Part shown: piece after piece, positions 39,963 through 57,575 of the stretch
Position numbering within the stretch: the first letter of the stretch is position 1
Layout of the letters: every line of letters begins with the position of its first letter
Source of the DNA: Utricularia gibba
Taxonomy: Eukaryota > Plantae > Magnoliophyta
Length of the DNA: 64,000 bases
Direction of reading: 5' to 3'
Assembly (NCBI GenBank): GCA_002189035.1
Contig: NEEC01000026.1
Coordinates: 310,001 to 374,000 of the forward strand
Notes under the pieces: model-generated
The model's input: the letters and a program-made list of their open reading frames with translations, nothing else
What the model was told of the DNA's origin: nothing
Databases searched by the model: none
Translations under genes and position numbers: made by a program

Positions 39963-41720
39963 TGTTAGTGTATATGTTTTAGAGACAATCAACTCATTGG
40001 CAAATCTTATCTTATGATATTTACTTTGAATTGTGATCAAATTTATATCATTGATAAAATTCTCTACTTGATCTATGTGCTATAGAAATTATGATAAGAT
40101 CATAATATGAGATTCTTCAAGCACTCATGCTCAAGTCAAAAACTCCCTAGCTAGAGTGTTTGTGAAATGAAGATATCACAAATACGGATAAGCTAGCACA
40201 CATTGAGTTCCCTAAACTATTTACGCAATGGTTCTCACAATTGATGTAATGAGATTACTAGAACCTATGTGTGGGTGTCGATTAGAGAATCAATTCACTG
40301 GATGACTCATCTTCGAGATGCTACTATGGGAAGCTAACCCAGTGTTAGTAGCAAGATCTCGAATATGAAAGCCGTGCAAGTAAGCTTAGACTTGAGGTCA
40401 ACAAAGTTATCTTGATCTTAAGCTCACATTTTCGCTCATTACTAATGGGAGCCTAACCATGGCTTGCCTAGTATGGATGGGTAGGTATGTGACTCCTTAA
40501 GGTTGGAGTAGTTGATTGATCAATAAAGGATTCATCACTCATGTTAGCGATGAGATCATATCTCAAGTAATTGCATCAAAGCCTAACAGTAAGTCCTGGG
40601 CCCAGGGTAATGACACTCGAATTGTTTGAGTAGGTCATTGAGTGTTAGTGCTTGAATGCAATTATAAGTTCGATACATCAGAAAGACACACACCCATGTT
40701 CTGGTACCGAATGAGATATAAGTATGATGAAAGCTATTCATTGCATGGTGGCTGGTCATGGAAAGGCTCAATCAGCTCACCTGATTATTCTTTAATCTTG
40801 GGATCATGATATGTTGCTAGACATCACTCATGATCGATAATGATGGATTTGATTAATTAAGAGTTAATTAATAAATCTATTATTACGGTTTTGATTGAAG
40901 AAGCCTATAGGGTCACACACAATAGTGGAGTTACTCAACGATATAAAATAGAATGACACAATTACATGAGATGTAATTGGTAAAGTGGATAAATTAAATT
41001 GAGAATTATTTTGAGATAATATTGATTAAACTCAAAATAAAAGATCATATATAGATAAGATTTGGAACATATACATATCTCCACAAGATAAGATCTTTAT
41101 GGAGATATGATTTGATATGTTACCATATATCTATCAAAAGATTCAGATTTTTAGAGAGGCCTCGAAGGTCTTCGTGCTCTCTGAGACTGATCCACAAGGA
41201 GGCGTTTTTTCTCTACTAGCATCTGAGAAATTCGACCAGCATTCAAGAGCCTTGAGAAGGTTATCGACGAAGTGCTCCACGTGTGGATACCATAGAGGTC
41301 GTCTGCTATTGGCGGTTGGTGAACAATGGAGTCATCTGAAAGGTACTTTGAACATCCATATGTCTGATGTATACTGTATTCCAAGATCTGCGTTGGGGGT
41401 TTCTCAAAATTTTTAAAATTCCACTGCTTTTGAGACATACGATGTCTACGAGAAACCCAACAGTGGTATCAGAGCAAGGTTACGGAATACGTGTATACGT
41501 TAGAATCTTTGCTGATTTTACGAGATGTTCTCGTATGTTGCCTTGTCGGTGACACGTTATAATCCTTGCTGATTTTTCGAGATGTTCTCGTATGTTGCCT
41601 TGCCGGCGATCATGATAATAGCATGTGATGCACGAAACCCAACAATAGACAGTTATTTTGATGTGTCGACGAAGAGATCGTTTGTGAGAATCTAGATGGC
41701 TCACTAGTCCAGAGCAATGA
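39963..41720 (+). mobile_element. 5' LTR (39963-41462) with tRNA-iMet PBS (41464-41475) and a short truncated internal region
   Basis: TGTTAG...CCAACA followed by GTGGTATCAGAGC; highly similar to the reverse complement of 54366-55817; 57-bp x2 repeat at 41504-41610. Confidence 0.92.
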
Positions 41721-45801: not shown

Positions 45802-45936
45802 CTAGAATGAAAAAAAGGGAAATGTCAATGCATCCGGGAAAAAATGATTAATCTTTATCAATAGCTCGGCTAACAACATGAACCATAGCGTACTTAGTAT
45901 TGGGGCCACACAGAGATATGTTTTTAGGTCTCGCAT
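45802..45936 (-). pseudogene. psaJ: Plastid psaJ copy (NUPT); ORF open but with substitutions
   Basis: [44 protein letters not shown]. Confidence 0.93.
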
Positions 45937-46208
45937 CGAAAAACCTCCTTTTTTACGTATTATAACACATAAAGAAAACGTATATATGATCAGATGCATA
46001 TGCACTTAAAGGTCACCTAAAGTTTGACACGGAATACTGAATGAAATGTACAATGATCCATAATTTTTTTTCTTATTAGTATATTTAAATAAAACCAAAA
46101 AGATTAACGAGACTAAAAAATTTTCTCTATCCATCCTTTCTCAATCGAGTAAATAGGAATGTGGAAAATAAGACAGGAATTCTCTAAATGACACTGTAGA
46201 CCAATTAA

Positions 46209-46282
46209 AGGGATGTGGCACAGTTTGGTTGCCCGTTTGTTTTGAGTACAAAATGTGACATGTTCAAATCATGTCATCCCTA
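46209..46282 (+). pseudogene. trnP: Plastid trnP-UGG pseudogene (NUPT); anticodon now TGA
   Basis: AGGGATGTGGCACAGTTTGGTTGCCCGTTTGTTTTGAGTACAAAATGTGACATGTTCAAATCATGTCATCCCTA. Confidence 0.9.
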
Positions 46283-46423
46283 CCTATTGCTGCCCTTTTG
46301 GAAAATAGAGTAAGATCTATTCAAATTGCGCGAACTCATTAAACTATCGAATACAAGGGATTCACTTAAGAAAAAGAATAATTTTCTTTTTTCTTTACAG
46401 CCTTTTCTATTCTGATAAAAAAC

Positions 46424-46496
46424 ACGCTCATGGTTCAGTTCGGTAGAACGTGGGTCTCCAAACCCGATGTCTTAGGTTCAAATCCTACAGAGCATG
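46424..46496 (+). pseudogene. trnW: Plastid trnW-CCA pseudogene (NUPT); 1-nt loss near the anticodon loop
   Basis: ACGCTCATGGTTCAGTTCGGTAGAACGTGGGTCTCCAAACCCGATGTCTTAGGTTCAAATCCTACAGAGCATG. Confidence 0.92.
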
Positions 46497-46739: not shown

Positions 46740-47005
46740 TTTTATTTTTTAAAACGGAGAAAAAAGGCAATTTTTCGGAAAATAGAAATAATCCATTGAT
46801 GTATTCTAGAACACTACTTAATTTTGATTAATAAGAACACTTTTCAAAATGCATGAAAAGGCGGGTCAATTTGAGAAATGGCCATCTCTCTCCTCGTAAA
46901 TTTGAGAGATGGCCATCCCGTAAAAGCTCTTTGAAAAATGGTCATACTGAAAATGGCCAATTAGAAGAAAATCAATATTCACCTAAATACATTGACACGT
47001 CATTG

Positions 47006-47623
47006 TATTTTGGTGAAATACTGGATTTCTTTTAATTGGCTATTTTCAAAGAAATCTAATTTATTAAACCATCTATCTAATTACATAGTATTCTACATAG
47101 TAATATAAATATGTGATGATAACTAATGAATTCTCTAATAATTGCAGAGCGCAAAAGATAATCATGCCCTTCTGTAGTTAATATACATATATATATCTAT
47201 ATAAACATTTGTGTTATCAAATTATACAATGCAAACAATTTCTTTTATTTAAACTATATAAATATATTACATAATTTACATATCACAAGGTAAATCCATT
47301 TTTGTATATGAAATGAATGGTCCTGAACAAATTGAGGTACTTTTTGCCAATTTTAATTTTCAATTCCAGTCTATACCACACACTTCAGGAAACGCAGTAA
47401 TCTGGAAGAGTTTTATAGCTTATGCATGGAGATCAGCTCCAAGTGTCTCGACATTTCTTAATTCCCTATGCAGCGCTCGAAAAAAAAACATGACTATTAT
47501 AATTTTCATTTCTGCACTCTTCAAGAACAACCATAATTTGGAAAAGTGATACAGTTTCAACATAAAAAGGAAGACATCACTAACCAAGCATTGCTTCGAT
47601 CGAAACCATAATTAATACAAGAA
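47006..47623 (+). repeat. Left long inverted repeat of the MULE
   Basis: Reverse complement of 56952-57575 with scattered mismatches. Confidence 0.92.
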
Positions 47624-49157
47624 GTTAATATAGATGAAGTAATATCTTTTGTGTAAAATGTAAAGCATGTTTCCGGATTTAGAAGCGATTTCTTTGGTGA
47701 GTCATCAATCAACAATGTATTCATTATATTGTAACGATAGTTGAACATTGTACCATCATCCCAAATATGTCGTAGGTCTTTAAATTTGATGGTGCTGAAG
47801 CTCCCGTCAATGCATATTCTGGTGTCATTACATTGACTTATCCCCAAAAAAATACAAGCTTTCGATGACTGCAATTTGCCATAATATAGTCGATTATTTT
47901 ATGTACGAGTGCACTACAGAGAAATAAAGTAATGAATATTTTAAAGTAATAGAAGGAAGGAGTACAAAGTTATGAGCATATGAACTTACTCTCTCCGTGA
48001 GGACCAAAATGCAACATCGAATGTTTCCATGTACCAATCTAGAAATTTGATACAATTTGGTCTGAGATAAACTACAATGAAAAACATACATCATTATTAT
48101 ACATATAATTAGAGTAGATCAATTTATTATGCTACTTACTTGCTCGATACTCAATGATGCAATTTGGTCTTCCAGCCGCTCGTCCTTTGTCCATAAACAC
48201 GACATCAGCAAGTACACCATTAACATCAAGGATGATCGATTTCATAGGTGTTGCAGCATCGATATCTTGAGGAATGAACGTCGGGTGTCTTGTTTCATAT
48301 TGGTAGATAGTGTCCCTTAGTTATGCAATTTCATTTCTAGTTGCTTCGAGCTCCAAACGCATCTAGATAATATCATTGTCATTCATTGTTGAGGGGCAGA
48401 CGAACCGACTGTCTTTTCCTCCTGTTCTTCTGGTCGAGTATGCATCTTACGAGGAGTGCCACACCATATATGGATTGATCCTCTAAGATTTGCAACGAGT
48501 GGCTCAATATCTACCCATCACATATCTTTTGCTACTACCAATGTTCCAAGACACTCTTTGTGCTCTTCATCCAATGGTTGCACACCTTACAATATACAAT
48601 ATACACATTCATTAATAGAAAATAAGAGAAAATTAATCAAATCACAAGATATTTACCAAAAAATAATCTTACAATTGGTCTTCCAATATTTGATTAGGTC
48701 GATAATTGCCTAGGTATCCTAATCATCAAATCTTCGAGTAGAGTAATTCATACGAAACTAGTCCACCAATCTCCATATGAGTCTTGTAAACCTGTGACAA
48801 TTTTAATTTTTGCCTTGGATGATATTGTAAAGTGATTCTTGTGGGCAACTTTGGAACACTTTACAATGCCAAACAATGCACTAACACTAAGCATAACTTC
48901 ATAAATGTAATAATATTACTGATGGAAGGTAGTGTTAAATGAGATAGTGAAACATGCACTAAACGAAGTACCGATTGGATAAAATGATGAATTGGTAATC
49001 TCAACCCACATTTGAAATGTTCGATACTCACAGCAAAAGCACAATCTCCAACATGCTTGGGTGATTCATCTGAAATTTGTTCTCCATCTTCCTTGTCTGA
49101 TATTACTAAATTTTCTGGCACCATATATCGCTGTTTGATTTTTTCTCCAATAGTCAT
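47557..49157 (-). pseudogene. MULE accessory gene: Transposase_28-like N-terminus, coiled coil, FCP1/NIF (HAD) phosphatase-like C-terminus
   Basis: EHFKCGLRLPIHHFIQSVL (GLRLP at 48993-49007); IILDVNGVLADVV (LDVNGVLAD at 48204-48230); RA|IYLRPNCIKFLDWYMETFDVAFWSSRR; FKDLRHIWD..NTLLIDDSPKKSLLNP. In-frame GT-AG introns at 48072-48139 and 47914-47989. Confidence 0.8.
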
Positions 49158-49648
49158 CTATTATACGAATGGTATAAATGTAAATATATAACATCAATAC
49201 TATGCATAAACTAACATATTAATCCACAAAAACATGAACATACAAATTGATATAATAAAAAAAGGTCAATTGGATATAGACATTCACTTCAAAAAGTAAC
49301 AATAATATTTTGTGTAATTTAATTAGAAAAGTGGCTCGGATTTGATGAAAATACCTGAATTAAATTCGTAAACTCACAAAAATGCATTGTATACAAGATA
49401 AAGATAATATAAATAATAAGGGTGAATTTAATACCTTGATAGAATTTGTAGAAATAGCCTAAAGAAAATTAAGATAGGGAAACCCTTTTATACCATGGTG
49501 AAGATGAAGAAAAAGAAGAGAAGAGGGGACCGAAGAAGAGAAATACAGTGGAAGAGAGAAAGAAGCGAGAGGTTGTAGGAACATTTAATAGGGTAGGTGT
49601 GTTTTACTTATGTTTAATGAATAAAAAAATTAATTTATGCTTGGAATC

Positions 49649-49937
49649 CTAGACGTTGCTTGTTACACACAAGTGATGCCTAGAGATATTTGGGCGTCAC
49701 CTATTGCACATAAGTGGCGTCCAAGGCTACTATTCAGATGCTATTAATGACAGATACACAATGTAAGCAGCAATCCAGGATATCTTGACGTCACTTATAT
49801 GACATAAACAGGGCCCTGGATGTCTATGAACGCTGCTTGTATGTACAATGCCCATGGCTGTCTGGGCATTGCTTGTGACATATAAGCAGTGCCCAAGATG
49901 TTGTGGACATTGCTTGGTACATATAAGAAGCGCCCAG
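49649..49937. repeat. Array of ~7 degenerate palindromic ~35-bp units (period ~42 bp)
   Basis: Examples: CTGGGCATTGCTT-GTGACATAT-AAGCAGTGCCCAAG (49862-49897) and TTGGGCGTCACCTATTGCACATAAGTGGCGTCCAAG (49690-49725). Confidence 0.7.
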
Positions 49938-50246
49938 ATAATAGCCATGTTTGGTTTTGCCTAGTACTTATAATTCACATCCAAGTCTCATTGTAAAAAT
50001 GAAAAATAGAATTGTGTTGTCTATTCGTACTAAGTTTGATATGATTTTATGACATTACTCCAGAATAATGAATCCACTCATGCTAGACATATAGGTTACA
50101 TAGAAATGTTCATTTTTTATGTCTAGAAAAAAAACTCTTTACCCTATCAAACATAGATTTTTTACCGTGCTCGATTGATGCGGTAGAGAAACTGGTCTCA
50201 TAGCTAGCATAGTCCCATCGTACAGTGGGACAATGTACCGATGATT

Positions 50247-53200
50247 TCAATAGCTCATCTTTTTTACCTCAGTCCAGTTGAGATGATGTGTGAAATGATG
50301 CCCGATATGTAGAGTGTGGATATTCTTGGCTAGATTCTGTTGCAAGATTCTGATCACGTCGGCCTCTGGTTCGTGTAGATTTTTGTGCTTGGTAATCCAT
50401 TGGCATTGCAAATCGAGTTGATCAAGGCCTGCCTCCACATACTTCCTTTTTCCAGGCAGGATCATGCACTAATGAAAATGACGTCGGTGGCCATTTATCT
50501 TCTGATCCTAGTGGTTGAAATTGCCTAATCTAGTGATCAAGATGTAACATCAAATTGATGACATCCCTGTGATCAATGTTCACCATTCGTCATGCCTATA
50601 CACATTGAATTACAAGTAAAAAGGATATACATATGAGTATATATAATGAAAGTAGTTGATCATAAATACCTGTTCTGCATGAGAACACGGTATGCCGAAA
50701 TTCTGCCACTTTCTACACTCACATGTGCCTTGAGCAACCATGACAATGAGTTTCTTTTGTTTTCCATTTTTCCTGCGTGTAGTAATCAAAATCTTTTTTG
50801 TGCATAATCAACTACCTTTATTGATGCATGAAGAATTGGTTTATCCCAACACGCATATAGCTTGTGCGATTGATCAACAAAACCAATGTGTCGATACATT
50901 TTTATATCTTGTTGAGAAGTAGTGCTCACATTGTACAAACGTTGCCTATATATATAAAAACCAAAATAAGATATGTAAATGCAACTTTTTATATTTTTCT
51001 AGTATTGTCTCACTCACCTGTGCCAATGCGCATTGGGGTAGATGTCTTGCTCTCTTTAATATTCCATTCATACCTTGATATTCCATTCATAGCTAAGTGT
51101 TTAGCCACTCATGAAAAGGGAAAGCAAAACGTTTTTATAGCATATCCTAAGCAATATTCTGGTTTCAAAGTTAAACAACAAGCAATGTATAACATAAATA
51201 GAAAAGACAAATTGTTCAAGCAGTAAATCTAAAACTAGTCTTAGCTAGGAACAGTATGTATCAAGAACGAAAGTAAATCTTCAAAGAAAACTTGTTCTTT
51301 AGGGTCGTCATCCCCTTCTTCTTCTACCCCATAAAAATCTCTAGAAAACATGTCGTGAGTATTCAATGGGGGAGATCTATCTTCTCTCTCTACTTTTTCC
51401 CCTTTTTGTCCAAAATCTCCCTTTTTCTTCTTCCTTGGATTTTGTATATACTTCTTTTCAGACTTCTGCCTCATCCTCTGCCACTACACTGTTCATATTC
51501 GGCTCCTTGGGATTTATGTTGCGACCTGCACTACATTGCTCAAAAAAAAATATTAGAGTAGATTTAGTCCCAACTAAGACTAAAATGACATGACTACGGT
51601 ACTATATGCAAAAATATGGAACTAAGTAGTAAAACTGGATTTTTGTAGCACAATATGAGTAATTTCCATGTACTCCATCACAAAAAAATATGTGTTATCA
51701 TACCTTCAACATGATTTGTTGTTAGCATACCATACCTATATGATAGTTATTGTTGTCGGTCAAAATTGCATGGTTAATATGTAACTACTAGTAAACATGC
51801 CTTACTCCTCCATTGTGCGACAATGTTAATGATTTAGGTTGTAACTTATTTAAATAATCCCATGCTTTTGGATGAATTGTATAAATTTCTCCCATGCACA
51901 ACCTCCATTTACTTACCGACGTTGCATACATGGCTTTCATAAATAGTTGCCTCATCTGTGGATATTTTCCATATTTTTCAAGAAAATTAGATTGTAAATG
52001 ACATATGCAATGACGATGTAAAACTCCATATTTAGACATGAATGCTCTTACTTTGGATGCTCCGTTCTCTATAGAAGGATATCGATCTGATATAACACAA
52101 CATGCTCTATTACCAAAAACATGTTGCTTCAATAGTTGAATAAACCAACACCAAGATTCATCATTTTCACATTCCACAACTGCAAAGGCGATGGGCAGAA
52201 GAAGACTAGAGGCATCCTTAGTTACAGCAATCAATAGCTTGTGAGAATATTGTGAATAGAGATGAGTAGCATCCATAGTGATTACCGGTTGACACCAACG
52301 GAATGCCTGAATACATTTTCCAAAAGACCAAAAACATACTGTAATATCTTTGTGTCACTAATTTTTGGATGCCTGTGTTGGTACCCTACAACAAAGGAAG
52401 GAGGCATACAGATGACTCCCATGTCCCATAAACAACTTCATATCCTTTTTGCAAGTTGTACCATGCTCGATAATATGAGATATCCTGATTTCTCTTTAAT
52501 CACCTGTTGAATAACTTTGTCTTTGGTACCAATATCGACTTCAAGAAAAGGTCTTGTGCATTCCGTGATGTATAATGAAGTAATATTTCGTTGGGATAAT
52601 GATTGTGATCCAAGACTTGTACAGGTGTGTGGCTCCTCAATACCTGTTATTTTCCAAATTGCATCACGTGTAAAATATGCACAACGAATCCTCCATTTTC
52701 ATCCCTTCTCCTTCATCTTATAGCAATGATATTCAACATACATCTCCTATTGCACTTTATATGATTTAAATTCACGATCAATTTTGAGACTGTATTCCAC
52801 AACATCATCATTGAAGGCCTCCTTTGATGAAAATTCTTGATATTTAAAGAATGGATAGGGCACTAAGCTAATGGGATCTAAGATTTCTCCAGAATGTTGA
52901 TCTTCATCTAGTATGGCATTTCTTATAAATGCAGGAGGTGCCTAAAGTGTATCATCAATATTAATTGTAGAATTATGTTCCCCTTCTTCTTATTCATTTA
53001 TCTCCTCACCTTCATCGATAGGCTCATTGCCTTGTATATCATAGTCGCTATCGCAGTCTTGCAAATCATCACGTAGAATGTCATTGGTCGCCAATTCATC
53101 ATGAATATCATCCTCGTGTAAATCAACATCACACCCCATATTTCGCACTTCCTTTGGAACTTGATCCATGAAAACATCAAATCCCATCTGTACATGGGTC

Positions 53201-53477
53201 GGATTGAAAGTATACAATAAATCATAATCGGAGGTAATACCTAGAATTCGTGTACACCTAGAAGACGAGTCATAAAATTGAACTCTTATTTGGATATCAA
53301 AATGTGTCGGATCTACATCACATACTGAACATAATTCATCTCGTAGACAATTCAACGACATCATACTATCGAAGCTTCAAATGTAGAGTGGTGGCATATC
53401 ATATGCTCTATAATCTTTGGGATACACAATCATATTATCTCCGTAAAAGATTTGACAATGATGGTTGTTGGATCCAT
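50247..53477 (-). pseudogene. MuDRA-type transposase pseudogene
   Basis: MuDR domain FSSKEAF..C..WRIRC..HTC (52620-52860); MULE domain DATHLYSQY..LPIAFAVVECE..SW.WF..VISDR..HRHC..HL; SWIM motif CECRKWQNFGIPCSHA (50671-50730); downstream FQPLGSEDKWP..GRP. Several stops. Confidence 0.92.
51076..51700. mobile_element. Solo LTR (625 bp) inserted in mudrA, 5-bp TSD TACCT
   Basis: TGATA...TATCA ends; TACCT at 51071-51075 and 51701-51705; removing it restores VEG-MNGILKRARHLP. Confidence 0.93.
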
Positions 53478-54129
53478 CTTCTAACCTCCCAGAACGAAAA
53501 GGAACTTTGGAATGAAATGAGACGAATGACAATGTGTGTGTCCATGATTCATAGAGGAATAATGCATTTGTGATGATGGGTAGCACATGTTATGTTACGT
53601 AGGGTAGTGATATTAAGTCATTTGGTGTATTTTTTAATGCGTGGTGCCTATGCTTTATCTTTACTTTACTTCACTTTTTTCTTTATATAACATCATAGTT
53701 TCAAATAACTGATGACATGGTCAATGATGTACACTACATTCTATATTGTCAAAGAACATCTTTGAGTATTACTTAGATGAATATTTTTTGTATAACATGT
53801 TCTAAACAATGAAAATTGATGTGTTTAAGTGCTCTTACATATGCATAACTGCTTAGAGAGAAAATGATTGGAATCACATAGGTAATATGTTCATTTATCA
53901 TCATGTATTCATTGCCATAAAATGATTGGAATCACATGTGCAAAGGCTAAACAAGTGAAATACGGGAGTGTACACGGAAGCCATCGGATCTTAAGAGTGC
54001 ATCATTTAGCACCCAACTATATGTAGCAGACCCCTCCCACTCAGCAAGCACATATATAAATTTCATGTTTTCATCACATACACTCAACACGTTGGTGGAT
54101 ATCACACCCTTTCGATTTCTGTACCTTGC

Positions 54130-56667
54130 AGCTTTACATTTCTTGACCCATATACCGATCTATGTACCATCTATGGCCCCAACACAATTCTACAAATGCA
54201 CAATCAATTTTACATATATTCTTAAAAACATGTAAGAAAGGTGTATCTACCTTGAAGTGCTTGAACTTTCCTTCGGATGCACGTTCCCAAGCAACTTCTA
54301 GGGTCTCTAAGAGTACCTCATGAAGGCAAAGGACTGCATGCAACACCTTTTGAAAGCACCAAGACTGTTGGGTCTCTCGTAGACATTGTATGTCTCAAAA
54401 GCAGCGAATTTTAAAATTTTTGAGAAACCCCAAACGCAGATCTTGGAATACGGTATACATCAGACGAAGGGATGTTCAAAATACCTTTCAAATGACTTCG
54501 TTGTTCATCAACCACCAATAGCAGACGGCCTCTATGGTATCCACATGTGGAGCACTCCGTCGATAACCTTCTCAAGGCTCTTGAATGCTGGTCGAATTTC
54601 TCAAGTGCTAGTAGAGAAAAATGCCTCCTTGTGGATCAGTCTCAAAGAGCACGAAGACCCTTTGGAGCAAATCTCAAGGTCTAAATCTTTTTTATAGATA
54701 TTTTGTGACATATCAAATCATATCTATATGAGATCTTTTATTTTGAGTTTAATTAATATTAATCTCAAAATAACTCTCTATTTAATTTATCCACCTTACC
54801 AATTACATCTCATGTAATTGTGTCATTCTATTTTATATCGATAAGTGACTCCACTGTTGTGTGTGACCCTATAGGTTTCTTCAATCAAGGCCGTAATAAT
54901 GGATTTATTAATTAACTCTAAATTAATCAAATCCATCATTATCGATCATGAATGATGTCTAGCAACATATCATGATCCCCAAGATTAAAGAATAATCACG
55001 TGAACTGATTGAGCCCTTCTATGACAGCCACCATGCAATGAACAGCTTTCATCATACTTATATTTCATTCGATATCAGAACATGGGTGTGTGTCTTTCTG
55101 ATATATCGAACTTATAATTGCATTCAAGCACTAACACTCAATGACCTACTCAAACAATTCGAGTGTCATTACCCTAGGCCCAGGACTTACTGTTAGGCTT
55201 TGATGCAATTACTTGAGATATGATCTCATCGCTAACATGAGTGATGAATCCTTTATTGATCAATCAACTATCTCCAACCTTAAGGAGTCACATACCTACC
55301 CATCCATACTAGGCAAGCCATGGTTAGGCTCCCATTAATAATGAGCGAAAATGTGAGCTTAAGATCAAGATAACTTTGTTGACCTTAGGTCTAAGCTTAC
55401 TTGCACGGCTTTCATATTCGAGATCTTGCTACTAACACTGGGTTAGCTTCCCATAGTAGCATCTCGAAGATGAGTCATCCAGTGAATTGATTCTCTAATC
55501 GACACCCACACATAGGTTCTAGTAATCTCATTACATCAATTGTGAGAACCATTGCGTAAATAGTTTAGGGAACTCAATGTGTGCTAGCTTATCCGTATTT
55601 GTGATATCTTCATTTCACAAACACTCTAGCTAGGGAGTTTTTGACTTGAGCATGAGTGCTTGAAGAATCTCACATTATGATCTCATCATAATTTCTATAG
55701 CACATAGATCAAGTAGAGAATTTTATCAATGATATAAATTTGATCACAATTCAAAGTAAATATCATAAGATAAGATCTGCCAATGAGTTGATTGTCTCTA
55801 GAACATATACACTAACAAAGACATAGTCTTGGTGCTCCACCTATAAACATGCTTCTGCACCCGAATTTTTTTATGGTGACCTAATATTTCTAAAAACATG
55901 CAAACCATCTCCATAACTATAACATATTTTCCAGCCTTTAAACTAGAATGATTTTCTAACAGACTGCATAAAATACAGAAGGCATCTCAGCTGATTCTCA
56001 AGTTCTCAATGGATGCGATGTTCACATCACTTACCAACCTACTAATATACTCAACTTGTTTAGTAATCTTGTCTGTAAGGGAATACCTGTGTCTCACCCT
56101 ATATCCCCTACGGTAATTTTTCCAATATAAGTATATTAACACATCCATCCCAACCAAGTATTTGGTTAATACTACCACATCCGCACTCAAGATGACATGA
56201 CCTCCATGGAAAAATCCATGTCCCCTCAACAATAGCAAAAATCGAGCAAAATAAATCCACACACACATAGCACAACTAATTTTGAAATTGGAAAATCACA
56301 TAACACACCCACTATGCGGTGCTGTCGTGGACAAACTCACTAAGAACAAAAAACACACTTACCGGAAGACCCACCCTTTGCGCTCAAATTGCACGTGATG
56401 CCGCCGGCAATTCATGAACCTTGCGTCTAGTTTGTAGATTTGTATTCAAATTTGGATGACGTGAGGGTAAAATTGGAAGCGAAGAGCCTTGTTTAGCTAA
56501 ATCAACCACCCCCCATGAGTTTAGCTAAACCCAGCTCGATGGGTTCCTGTCGGGTATATAGGCACCTAGCGGGTTTATTTTTATCCGCCTGAAACCCACG
56601 AACCAAACGTGGATTTATGTCTAAATCCACGCCACAACCCACCTAAACCACCCAACCAAATGCACCC
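54130..56667 (-). mobile_element. PIF/Harbinger element remnant (5' TIR and transposase N-terminal half) nested in the MULE
   Basis: TIR GGGTGCATTTGGTT (56667-56654) next to a TTA/TAA target; KQVEYISRLVSDVNIASIENLR, MFLEILGHH, VLHAVLCLHEVLL and KFKHFK resemble the PIF transposase N-terminus. Confidence 0.72.
54366..55817 (-). mobile_element. Solo LTR (1452 bp) inserted in the Harbinger transposase, 5-bp TSD AAGAC
   Basis: TGTTG...TAACA ends; AAGAC at 54361-54365 and 55818-55822; same family as 39963-41462. Confidence 0.96.
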
Positions 56668-56951
56668 TAAAGGAAAAAGAGGGGCAGATCTTTACATACA
56701 AGACAATACTTTATGAGTTGAATGTGCCTCTGAAATGATTCCAATTCCAATACAAGTAGTGTATCTTGAAGAACAAGCATCTCATTATAGGAGTGGAGGA
56801 AGTAGAAAGGGAAAGGAAAAGACGTGCTAGGATGATGGGTGATACATGGTTTTTATGTGGCACTTTTGGTTGTATCAATTATTAGAAGTGACTAATGTTT
56901 GTGATATTTGCATTGTTTTATGACTTTGTTTGAAGTAGACATTTAGTGGTT

Positions 56952-57575
56952 TTCTTGTATTAACTATGGTTTCAATTGAAGCAATGCTTGATTAGTGATG
57001 TCTTCCTTTTTATGTTGAAACTGTATCACTCTTCCAAATTATGTTTGTTCTTGAAGAGTGCAGAAATGAAAATTGTAATAGTCATATTTTTTTTTCCGAG
57101 CGCTGTGTAGGGAATTAAGTGACGCCTAGACATCTGGAGTTGATCTCCATGCATAGATTGTAAAACTCTTCCGGATTACTACATTTCTTGAAGTGTGTGG
57201 AATAGACTTGAATTGAAAATCAAAATTGGAAAAAAAGTACCTCACTTTATTCAAGACCATTCATTTCATATACAATAATGGATTTACTCTTTGATATGTA
57301 AATTATGTACATATATTTATATAGTTTAATTAAAAGAAATTGTTTGCATTATATAATTAATTACACAAATGTTTATATAGATATATATATGTATATTAAT
57401 TACAAGAGGGCATGATTATCTTTTGTGCTCTGTAATTATTAGAGAATTCATTAGTTATCATTACATATTTATATTATTATGTAGAATACTATGTAATTAG
57501 ATAGATGAATTAATAAATTAGATTTATACTAAAAATGGCCAATTAAAAAAAATTCAGTATTTCACCTAAATACTT
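56952..57575 (-). repeat. Right long inverted repeat of the MULE
   Basis: Reverse complement of 47006-47623. Confidence 0.92.

Follow-up and report, generated by a model that had tools for sequence, protein, structure and literature searches.

What does a decayed plant DNA transposon carry between its transposase gene and its nearer end? The question is raised by a window of 64,000 nucleotides from Utricularia gibba (contig NEEC01000026.1; all coordinates are positions in this window), in which a Mutator-like element (MULE) holds a feature on the minus strand at 47557-49157. A preliminary description read there an accessory gene that fused a Transposase_28-like domain, a coiled coil and a phosphatase-like domain of the FCP1/NIF type. 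We conclude, with a probability of roughly 0.7, that the locus is a dead copy of a multi-copy MULE of the autonomous type, which carries downstream of its transposase gene mudrA a Transposase_28-like remnant and the remnant of a captured, spliced NIF gene.

The MULE is about 10.6 kb long (47005-57573) and the feature forms the innermost part of its left end. Its ends are the long terminal inverted repeats (TIRs) that mark the MULE/MuDR superfamily (Table 1). Between them lies a decayed gene with the two hallmarks of a MURA-type transposase, a MULE domain (PF10551, E 1.6e-12, 51788-52276) and a SWIM zinc finger (PF04434, E 3.8e-6, 50610-50789). Because mudrA lies inside the element, this is not a Pack-MULE, a non-autonomous element with captured host fragments only. 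As first described, the feature has the orientation of mudrA and lies downstream of it, both being on the minus strand of the TIR-bounded MULE.

Evidence for the captured gene comes from its exon structure. All three peptide strings of the preliminary description are present on the minus strand where it had placed them, and the two GT-AG introns that it had drawn do splice in frame: read base by base, they lie in phases 1 and 2 (GCA A/GT..AG/TT for intron 1 and GA/GT..AG/T for intron 2, a slash marking each junction). The suggested search against Pfam NIF (PF03031) gave little on single exon pieces, E 0.026 at best; it is the spliced reading of 143 residues, with an X at the frameshift, that matches a profile of 146 host NIF domains at 127 bits (E 3.4e-35, Z = 1e6). 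Four pieces of the window tile the NIF domain of two proteins (P0017 and P0008) in order. When the last exon was run with HMMER against 1.84 billion representatives, 20 matches came back, identity to the host proteins being 35-45%. One of them, P0002, was discarded as an unrelated repeat protein; the nine other long matches that were scanned with Pfam all contain NIF domains (E 1e-15 to 1e-42). A word-indexed protein search with the 94-residue last exon, its candidates limited to proteins of similar length, gave no match, a search of the PDB with the same exon gave chance matches only, and a metagenome scan with transposon-type peptide patterns gave none.

How the gene entered the element can be read from its introns. 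We mapped the exons of two host genes, that of Camellia sinensis base by base and that of Arctium lappa on a coarser scale (contigs L003 and L002). In Camellia, introns follow ...RRA (phase 1, an ATT codon split as A/TT) and WSSRT plus 2 nt (phase 2), separate LLFCW from DISHC (phase 0) and follow LLNP (phase 0); the Arctium map agrees wherever it is resolved. Introns 1 and 2 of the window copy interrupt the identical codon in the identical phase. Since host and window copy have these introns in common, the gene would have been taken as genomic DNA and not as a processed transcript, which supports the DNA-level capture proposed in the preliminary description. The third host intron (before D-x-S-x-C) is absent from the window copy, whose frameshift sits at that exon junction. 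It is absent also from the only close relative compared, a 1001-nt contig of Logan run SRR2033663 (L001) that bears the protein P0001. This contig keeps the fourth host intron (CCA/GTAAAC...CAG/GTA AAC AAT GCA); it lacks a second host intron too, before GDLRVYL, and retains introns 1, 2 and 4 and the C-terminal extension missing from the window copy. Having lost this one intron precisely marks the transposon-type lineage as derived, and the gene structure suits a captured copy that has since changed better than it suits an ordinary family member. The transposon-type pair nests inside the eudicot host family, so that a passage from host to transposon is the simple reading of the direction. The donor lineage came out as Cornales in a quick tree of 148 rows (94% SH-aLRT) and as Rosales in a careful tree of 66 rows (99/70), and we reject any donor call because the stem measures 1.5-3 changes per site.

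The family from which the gene would have come can be told from its motifs. In 131 of the 146 host NIF domains the second Asp of motif I of the HAD fold (position D+2) is replaced by Asn, which places the NIF part in the plant DxNG variant subfamily to which it had been assigned at the outset, perhaps the group labelled At3g29760/At4g26190-like. The Gly after this Asn and the motifs W-S-S, K..W, DDSP and LLNP are near-invariant among the 146 domains, and every one of them is kept in the window copy. In HAD phosphatases the Asp at D+2 is the general acid. The window copy reads D-V-N-G in place of the canonical DxDx(T/V); it has the Ser/Thr of motif II (WSS), the Lys of motif III (FKDL..W) and the DD of motif IV (IDDSP), and it lacks the last strand and helix that complete the domain of an active FCP1/SCP-type phosphatase. 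Because the general acid is replaced by Asn, we do not class the DxNG family among the ordinary active FCP1/SCP enzymes: ordinary phosphatase chemistry appears doubtful for the window NIF and the host family, and a role in phospho-binding or slow turnover seems more likely. By sequence, the solved structure nearest to the host family is that of UBLCP1 (PDB 3SHQ, E 3.7e-5).

The window copy is a pseudogene, as had been recognised, since it carries frameshifts, has lost a splice donor and lacks its 3' exons. We compared the DNA contigs of four public runs with positions 47000-52900. In run X6, three contigs have an extra base after 47841 that exactly repairs the shift in the G run (47842-47845), which shows this shift to be real. 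The statement that it was the only one is probably too generous: a -2/-1 pair that would compensate each other is likely near 47829 and 47806, and the eight residues between are scrambled when compared with L001 and the hosts. At 47848 all six X6 contigs read C for A, which restores the host-like Cys of ..LVFCW. The profile alignment ends at LLNP, position 151 of 222 and 50 nt before the TIR, the last 70 or so residues of the domain being missing. The inner TIR was considered as the home of the missing 3' exons and rejected: neither tblastn nor blastn found significant similarity to host C-termini or to the 3' part of L001. An X6 contig matching 47621-48085 continues for 122 nt unlike the window TIR, a hint that the 3' loss may be particular to the window copy. 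A stretch of 16 nt encoding RPNCI occurs twice at 48090-48160, at the end of exon 1 and the start of exon 2 (15/16 match), and looks like a micro-duplication or a conversion across intron 1.

Table 1. Coordinates of the MULE and of the parts of its cargo in the window.
Feature	Position	Strand	Remarks
Left TIR of the MULE	47005..47623		Pairs with 56952-57573 over 623 bp, 90.0% identity (inverted-repeat search and alignment)
Remnant of intron after LLNP	47624..47673	-	Donor lost (CCG GAA; CCA GTA in L001); runs directly into the TIR; later exons absent
NIF exon 3 (host exons 3 and 4 joined without intron)	47674..47913	-	S-x-C, K..W motif, DDSP..LLNP; shift in G run 47842-47845
Intron 2, GT..AG	47914..47989	-	Phase 2; same site and phase as host intron after WSSRT + 2 nt
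NIF exon 2, motif II (FDVAFWSS)	47990..48071	-	Pfam NIF E 0.026 on the exon piece alone
Intron 1, GT..AG	48072..48139	-	Phase 1, splits ATT codon; same site and phase as host intron after ...RRA
NIF exon 1, motif I (ILDVNGVLAD)	48140..48245	-	Alignment with host NIF and profile match; ends GCA A/GTAAGT, phase 1
Linker between Transposase_28 and NIF homologies	48246..48747	-	About 500 nt; heptad-like stretch 48297-48362, TAG 48363-48365, TAA 48321-48323
Transposase_28-like remnant	48748..49157	-	ATG-started open reading frame 48861-49157, frameshift near 48890, continuation ends ...GDWWTSFV
Decayed mudrA transposase gene	50247..53586	-	Many stops and shifts in the frame reading
Very-high-copy insertion interrupting mudrA, about 0.63 kb	51068..51703		Summed contig depth 20-30 times that of the flanks in runs X1, X2 and X6
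Right TIR of the MULE	56952..57573		Pairs with 47005-47623

Is this cargo peculiar to one copy, or does it belong to the element? Summed over contigs, the depth of run X6 amounts to 150-300 across 47591-49166, as against 100-200 over mudrA outside its high-copy insert, and individual positions have 6-11 distinct contigs, most of them 80-95% alike. Furthermore, three stretches of the feature (47998-48114, 48186-48380 and 48675-49030) recur in the same order on a 4.5-kb X6 contig, record 18, so that a second, diverged copy has the same layout of Transposase_28 followed by NIF. With a depth like that of mudrA and a second colinear contig, the feature is not the one-off Pack-MULE fragment that the preliminary description had named among the outcomes that would refute its proposal. 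Three short open reading frames (ORFs; P0004, P0009 and P0010), on contigs of about 1 kb, read through the host-type intron acceptor and were set aside as host genes.

The pattern of substitutions can be judged against L001, whose protein P0001 is a singleton. The two copies are 60% identical in the last exon and form a clade with 99-100% support on a very long stem. By the NG86 method, the 44-codon core from GSF to LLNP shows 17.5 synonymous and 10.5 non-synonymous differences, that is a non-synonymous rate (dN) of 0.11, a synonymous rate (dS) of 1.56 and a ratio of 0.07; dN/dS is 0.74 over the 18 preceding codons and 0.16 over all 62 codons, a small sample from a single relative. The ratio, which the preliminary description had proposed as a check, is thus well below 1 in the core and overall, and this argues that the NIF lineage would have functioned as a gene during the greater part of the time since the window copy and L001 separated. 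The same numbers bear on the alternative that a host fragment was picked up once in the manner of a Pack-MULE, spread with the element and was never used. MULEs often capture host fragments (PMC4858842, PMC6446971) and the window copy is 3'-truncated and rich in lesions; however, the element is autonomous in type and not a Pack-MULE, neutrality would predict about one synonymous to four non-synonymous differences in the core where 17.5 and 10.5 are found, and all family-invariant residues are kept at 35-45% identity to the hosts. We therefore consider a neutral passenger improbable.

The upstream part of the feature deserves separate attention. Its ORF at 48861-49157 matches PF04195 at E 2.4e-7 and 31.3 bits, above the Pfam gathering cut-off of 26.2, and the ESM Atlas groups it with Transposase_28 clusters at 0.95; the Transposase_28-like domain of the preliminary description thus passes the HMMER check proposed for it. 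A word-indexed search with the 98-residue ORF, again among proteins of similar length, gave no match. Transposase_28 is the hallmark domain, of unknown role, of the antisense ORF of Retand/Tat long terminal repeat (LTR) retrotransposons (PMC11963269, PMC7264820), and Tat-type elements occur in the same window, so this part could be a fragment of such a retrotransposon that landed in the MULE, unconnected with the NIF gene. We find this very hard to credit. The Transposase_28/NIF region has no DNA similarity to the Tat elements or to any other part of the window, and at the protein level the remnant and the Tat-type Transposase_28 elsewhere in the window are 35% identical over 40 residues only. 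Moreover, the X6 depth is that of a MULE rather than of a retrotransposon, and the order of Transposase_28 and NIF is repeated in another contig.

Several observations weigh against our reading of the locus as a MULE with a captured cargo that was put to use. (i), no 9-bp target-site duplication is present at the ends of the MULE, where a repeat of 9-11 bp is the criterion: the flanks, CACGTCATT and TTGTCAGAA, differ. The copy is old, and a rearrangement is suggested by a 47-bp fragment of the right terminus of the MULE (46944-46990, 87.5% identical) that lies 14 bp outside the left TIR and forms a small palindrome with it; the fragment may equally be what is left of another copy next to this one. 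(ii), L001 is a decayed contig of about 1 kb that may not be transposon-borne, so that the signal of selection could stem from a paralogue outside any transposon. (iii), the position of the transposon-type clade among the hosts is unstable in the trees. (iv), the fold of the window copy stops short of its last strand and helix, which makes a truncated capture possible. (v), the linker between the two homologies gives no sign of coding. Even along its path with the fewest stops, about 146 codons include 5-6 stops and 1-2 shifts, roughly what its composition would give by chance; its longest open piece was not recognised in the ESM Atlas (recognition 1244, below known families); and tblastn with the linker found zero similarity. 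(vi), no ESM Atlas cluster near the Transposase_28 or the NIF part combines PF04195 with PF03031, and the two occur together in none of the best 120 of 905 annotated relatives. These 905 matches came from a third search, with a profile built from host and window pieces, and the best 120, all of host type with PF03031 alone, are the part to which this result applies.

Points (v) and (vi) concern above all the fusion. The heptad-like string (II-stop-MRLELEATRNEIA-stop-LRDTIYQY) is present on the minus strand and its stops are TAG and TAA, as described; its coding nature does not follow, stops being about as frequent as by chance and relatives being absent, and the coiled coil amounts to about four heptads judged by eye. 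The continuity of the three parts in one transcript thus finds no support in a linker that statistics and similarity cannot tell from non-coding DNA. With an uninformative linker and no protein with both domains among the relatives compared, two neighbouring genes become a serious rival to the fusion: a Transposase_28-type gene, like the antisense ORF of Tat/Retand elements, followed by a NIF gene whose start codon would be the ATG at 48245, with motif I beginning five residues later. The X6 depth is lowest over the linker, with a dip at 48379-48575, which would suit two genes. On the other hand, strand and order are the same in the second diverged contig, there is weak similarity to L001 upstream of the NIF exon, and the host NIF proteins all have a long N-terminal extension in the exon of motif I. 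We rate two separate genes as possible and on the doubtful side, and a single Transposase_28-NIF protein is a possible reading of the same stretch. A 162-nt contig of run X7, a run labelled as another organism (organism B), matches the linker at 48553-48672 with 0 substitutions and one gap, and almost nothing else of the element is found in that run.

Within the reading that we prefer, a dead MULE with a Transposase_28 remnant and a captured NIF gene, the following course of events may be proposed. A host NIF gene would have been captured as genomic DNA by an ancestor of the MULE family and would then have diverged strongly under purifying selection, giving the long stem; the window copy would have been inactivated later by shifts, stops, the loss of a splice donor and the loss of 3' exons. 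Tentatively, intact copies may encode an accessory protein whose HAD-like pocket, keeping the Asp nucleophile without the general acid, binds or slowly turns over a protein phosphorylated on Ser or Thr. Fused to the Transposase_28 module or alongside it, such a protein would aid the transposition or expression of the element, like mudrB, VANC or the ULP1-type cargo. The suggestion that it acts on polymerase carboxy-terminal domains (CTDs) or on silencing factors is speculation. The full proposal, that a MULE lineage long kept under selection a chimeric protein of the Tat/Retand-type Transposase_28 module and a captured DxNG CTD-phosphatase-like domain, and that this protein would favour the element by trapping phospho-proteins, or slowly dephosphorylating them, in the machinery of transcription, the proteasome or silencing, is in our view unlikely as a whole, a shade more so than its biochemical part.

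Other insertions mark the same region. Some contigs skip 51067-51698, which indicates copies of the element without the insertion in mudrA; clean inverted or terminal repeats were looked for in this insertion and none were found. Upstream of mudrA, inside the MULE, lies one copy of a 1.5-kb inverted repeat pair (54364-55817 and 39963-41464, 91.6% identical), which is probably a nested element, and the MULE also holds, on the minus strand, a weakly recognisable relic of a DDE_Tnp_4 transposase of the PIF/Harbinger type (53947-54260, E 0.06). Just to the left of the MULE, an insertion of plastid DNA (45802-46496) contains psaJ (PF01701, E 1e-14, minus strand) and transfer RNA genes at 46209-46282 and 46424-46496.

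Why would such a cargo matter? How DNA transposons adjust their integration and evade silencing is best approached through the accessory genes of MULEs, such as mudrB, VANC and those of the ULP1 type, of which few kinds are known. If the NIF cargo was indeed under selection, a phosphatase fold would be a new biochemical class of MULE accessory gene. It would then provide the first hint of function for two uncharacterised families, the Transposase_28 domain and the widespread DxNG NIF proteins of plants, and would show clearly how a gene captured with its introns later lost some of them. The window copy is a fossil and the value rests with the family. A 2025 survey of active plant TIR elements lists Zf-GRF, Peptidase_C48, NAM-associated and plant mobile domain (PMD) sequences as recurrent extra domains, and neither Transposase_28 nor NIF is among those named in its main text (PMC12973397). 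The same paper shows that MURB binds the N-terminus of MURA. In a full-text search of the literature that paired MULE or Mutator with Transposase_28, FCP1, NIF or CTD phosphatase, no description of such a cargo was found. The NIF-type MULE cargo is real and multi-copy, and apparently undescribed.

Among known systems, the MULE accessory genes come closest in position: mudrB of maize, VANB and VANC of the Arabidopsis VANDAL elements, ULP1/Peptidase_C48 genes and PMD sequences fused to MURA likewise provide a second gene between the transposase and the TIR that is common to the copies of a family. The domains here are different ones, Transposase_28 and a NIF/HAD-like fold, and the gene is co-oriented with mudrA, whereas the genes of MuDR are convergent. 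Pack-MULEs likewise hold host gene sequence with introns between MULE TIRs; in contrast to them, the window element has its own transposase, and its captured part covers most of a domain and bears the mark of purifying selection against L001.

The presumed donor family offers a further comparison. The eudicot DxNG NIF proteins, found in databases under such names as 'FCP1 homology domain-containing protein C1271.03c-like', 'TIM50' and 'UBLCP1', have the same signature residues and share introns 1 and 2 (and 4, through L001), whereas the window copy is 35-45% identical to them on a very long stem, has no intron before D-x-S-x-C, lacks the C-terminal 70 residues and lies inside a transposon. Genuine UBLCP1 and the FCP1/SCP1 CTD phosphatases have the canonical DxDx(T/V), whose second Asp is Asn here and in the host family. 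The antisense ORF of Tat/Retand elements has the same Pfam domain at its N-terminus, and the C-terminal parts of these proteins are often coiled-coil-like (PMC11963269); the gene in the window belongs to a DNA transposon and is distant from the Tat copies around it. The nearest analogy in logic is provided by MAIL3 and VvMAIL2.2, in which a PMD and a phosphatase domain of the PP7 type form one protein (PMC7156037). There the fusion is proven, the genes belong to the host and the fold is that of a metallo-phosphatase, as opposed to a HAD-like fold within a transposon and a fusion that is only possible; what they have in common is a transposon-derived domain brought together with a phosphatase-like one, along a pathway with ties to transposon silencing.

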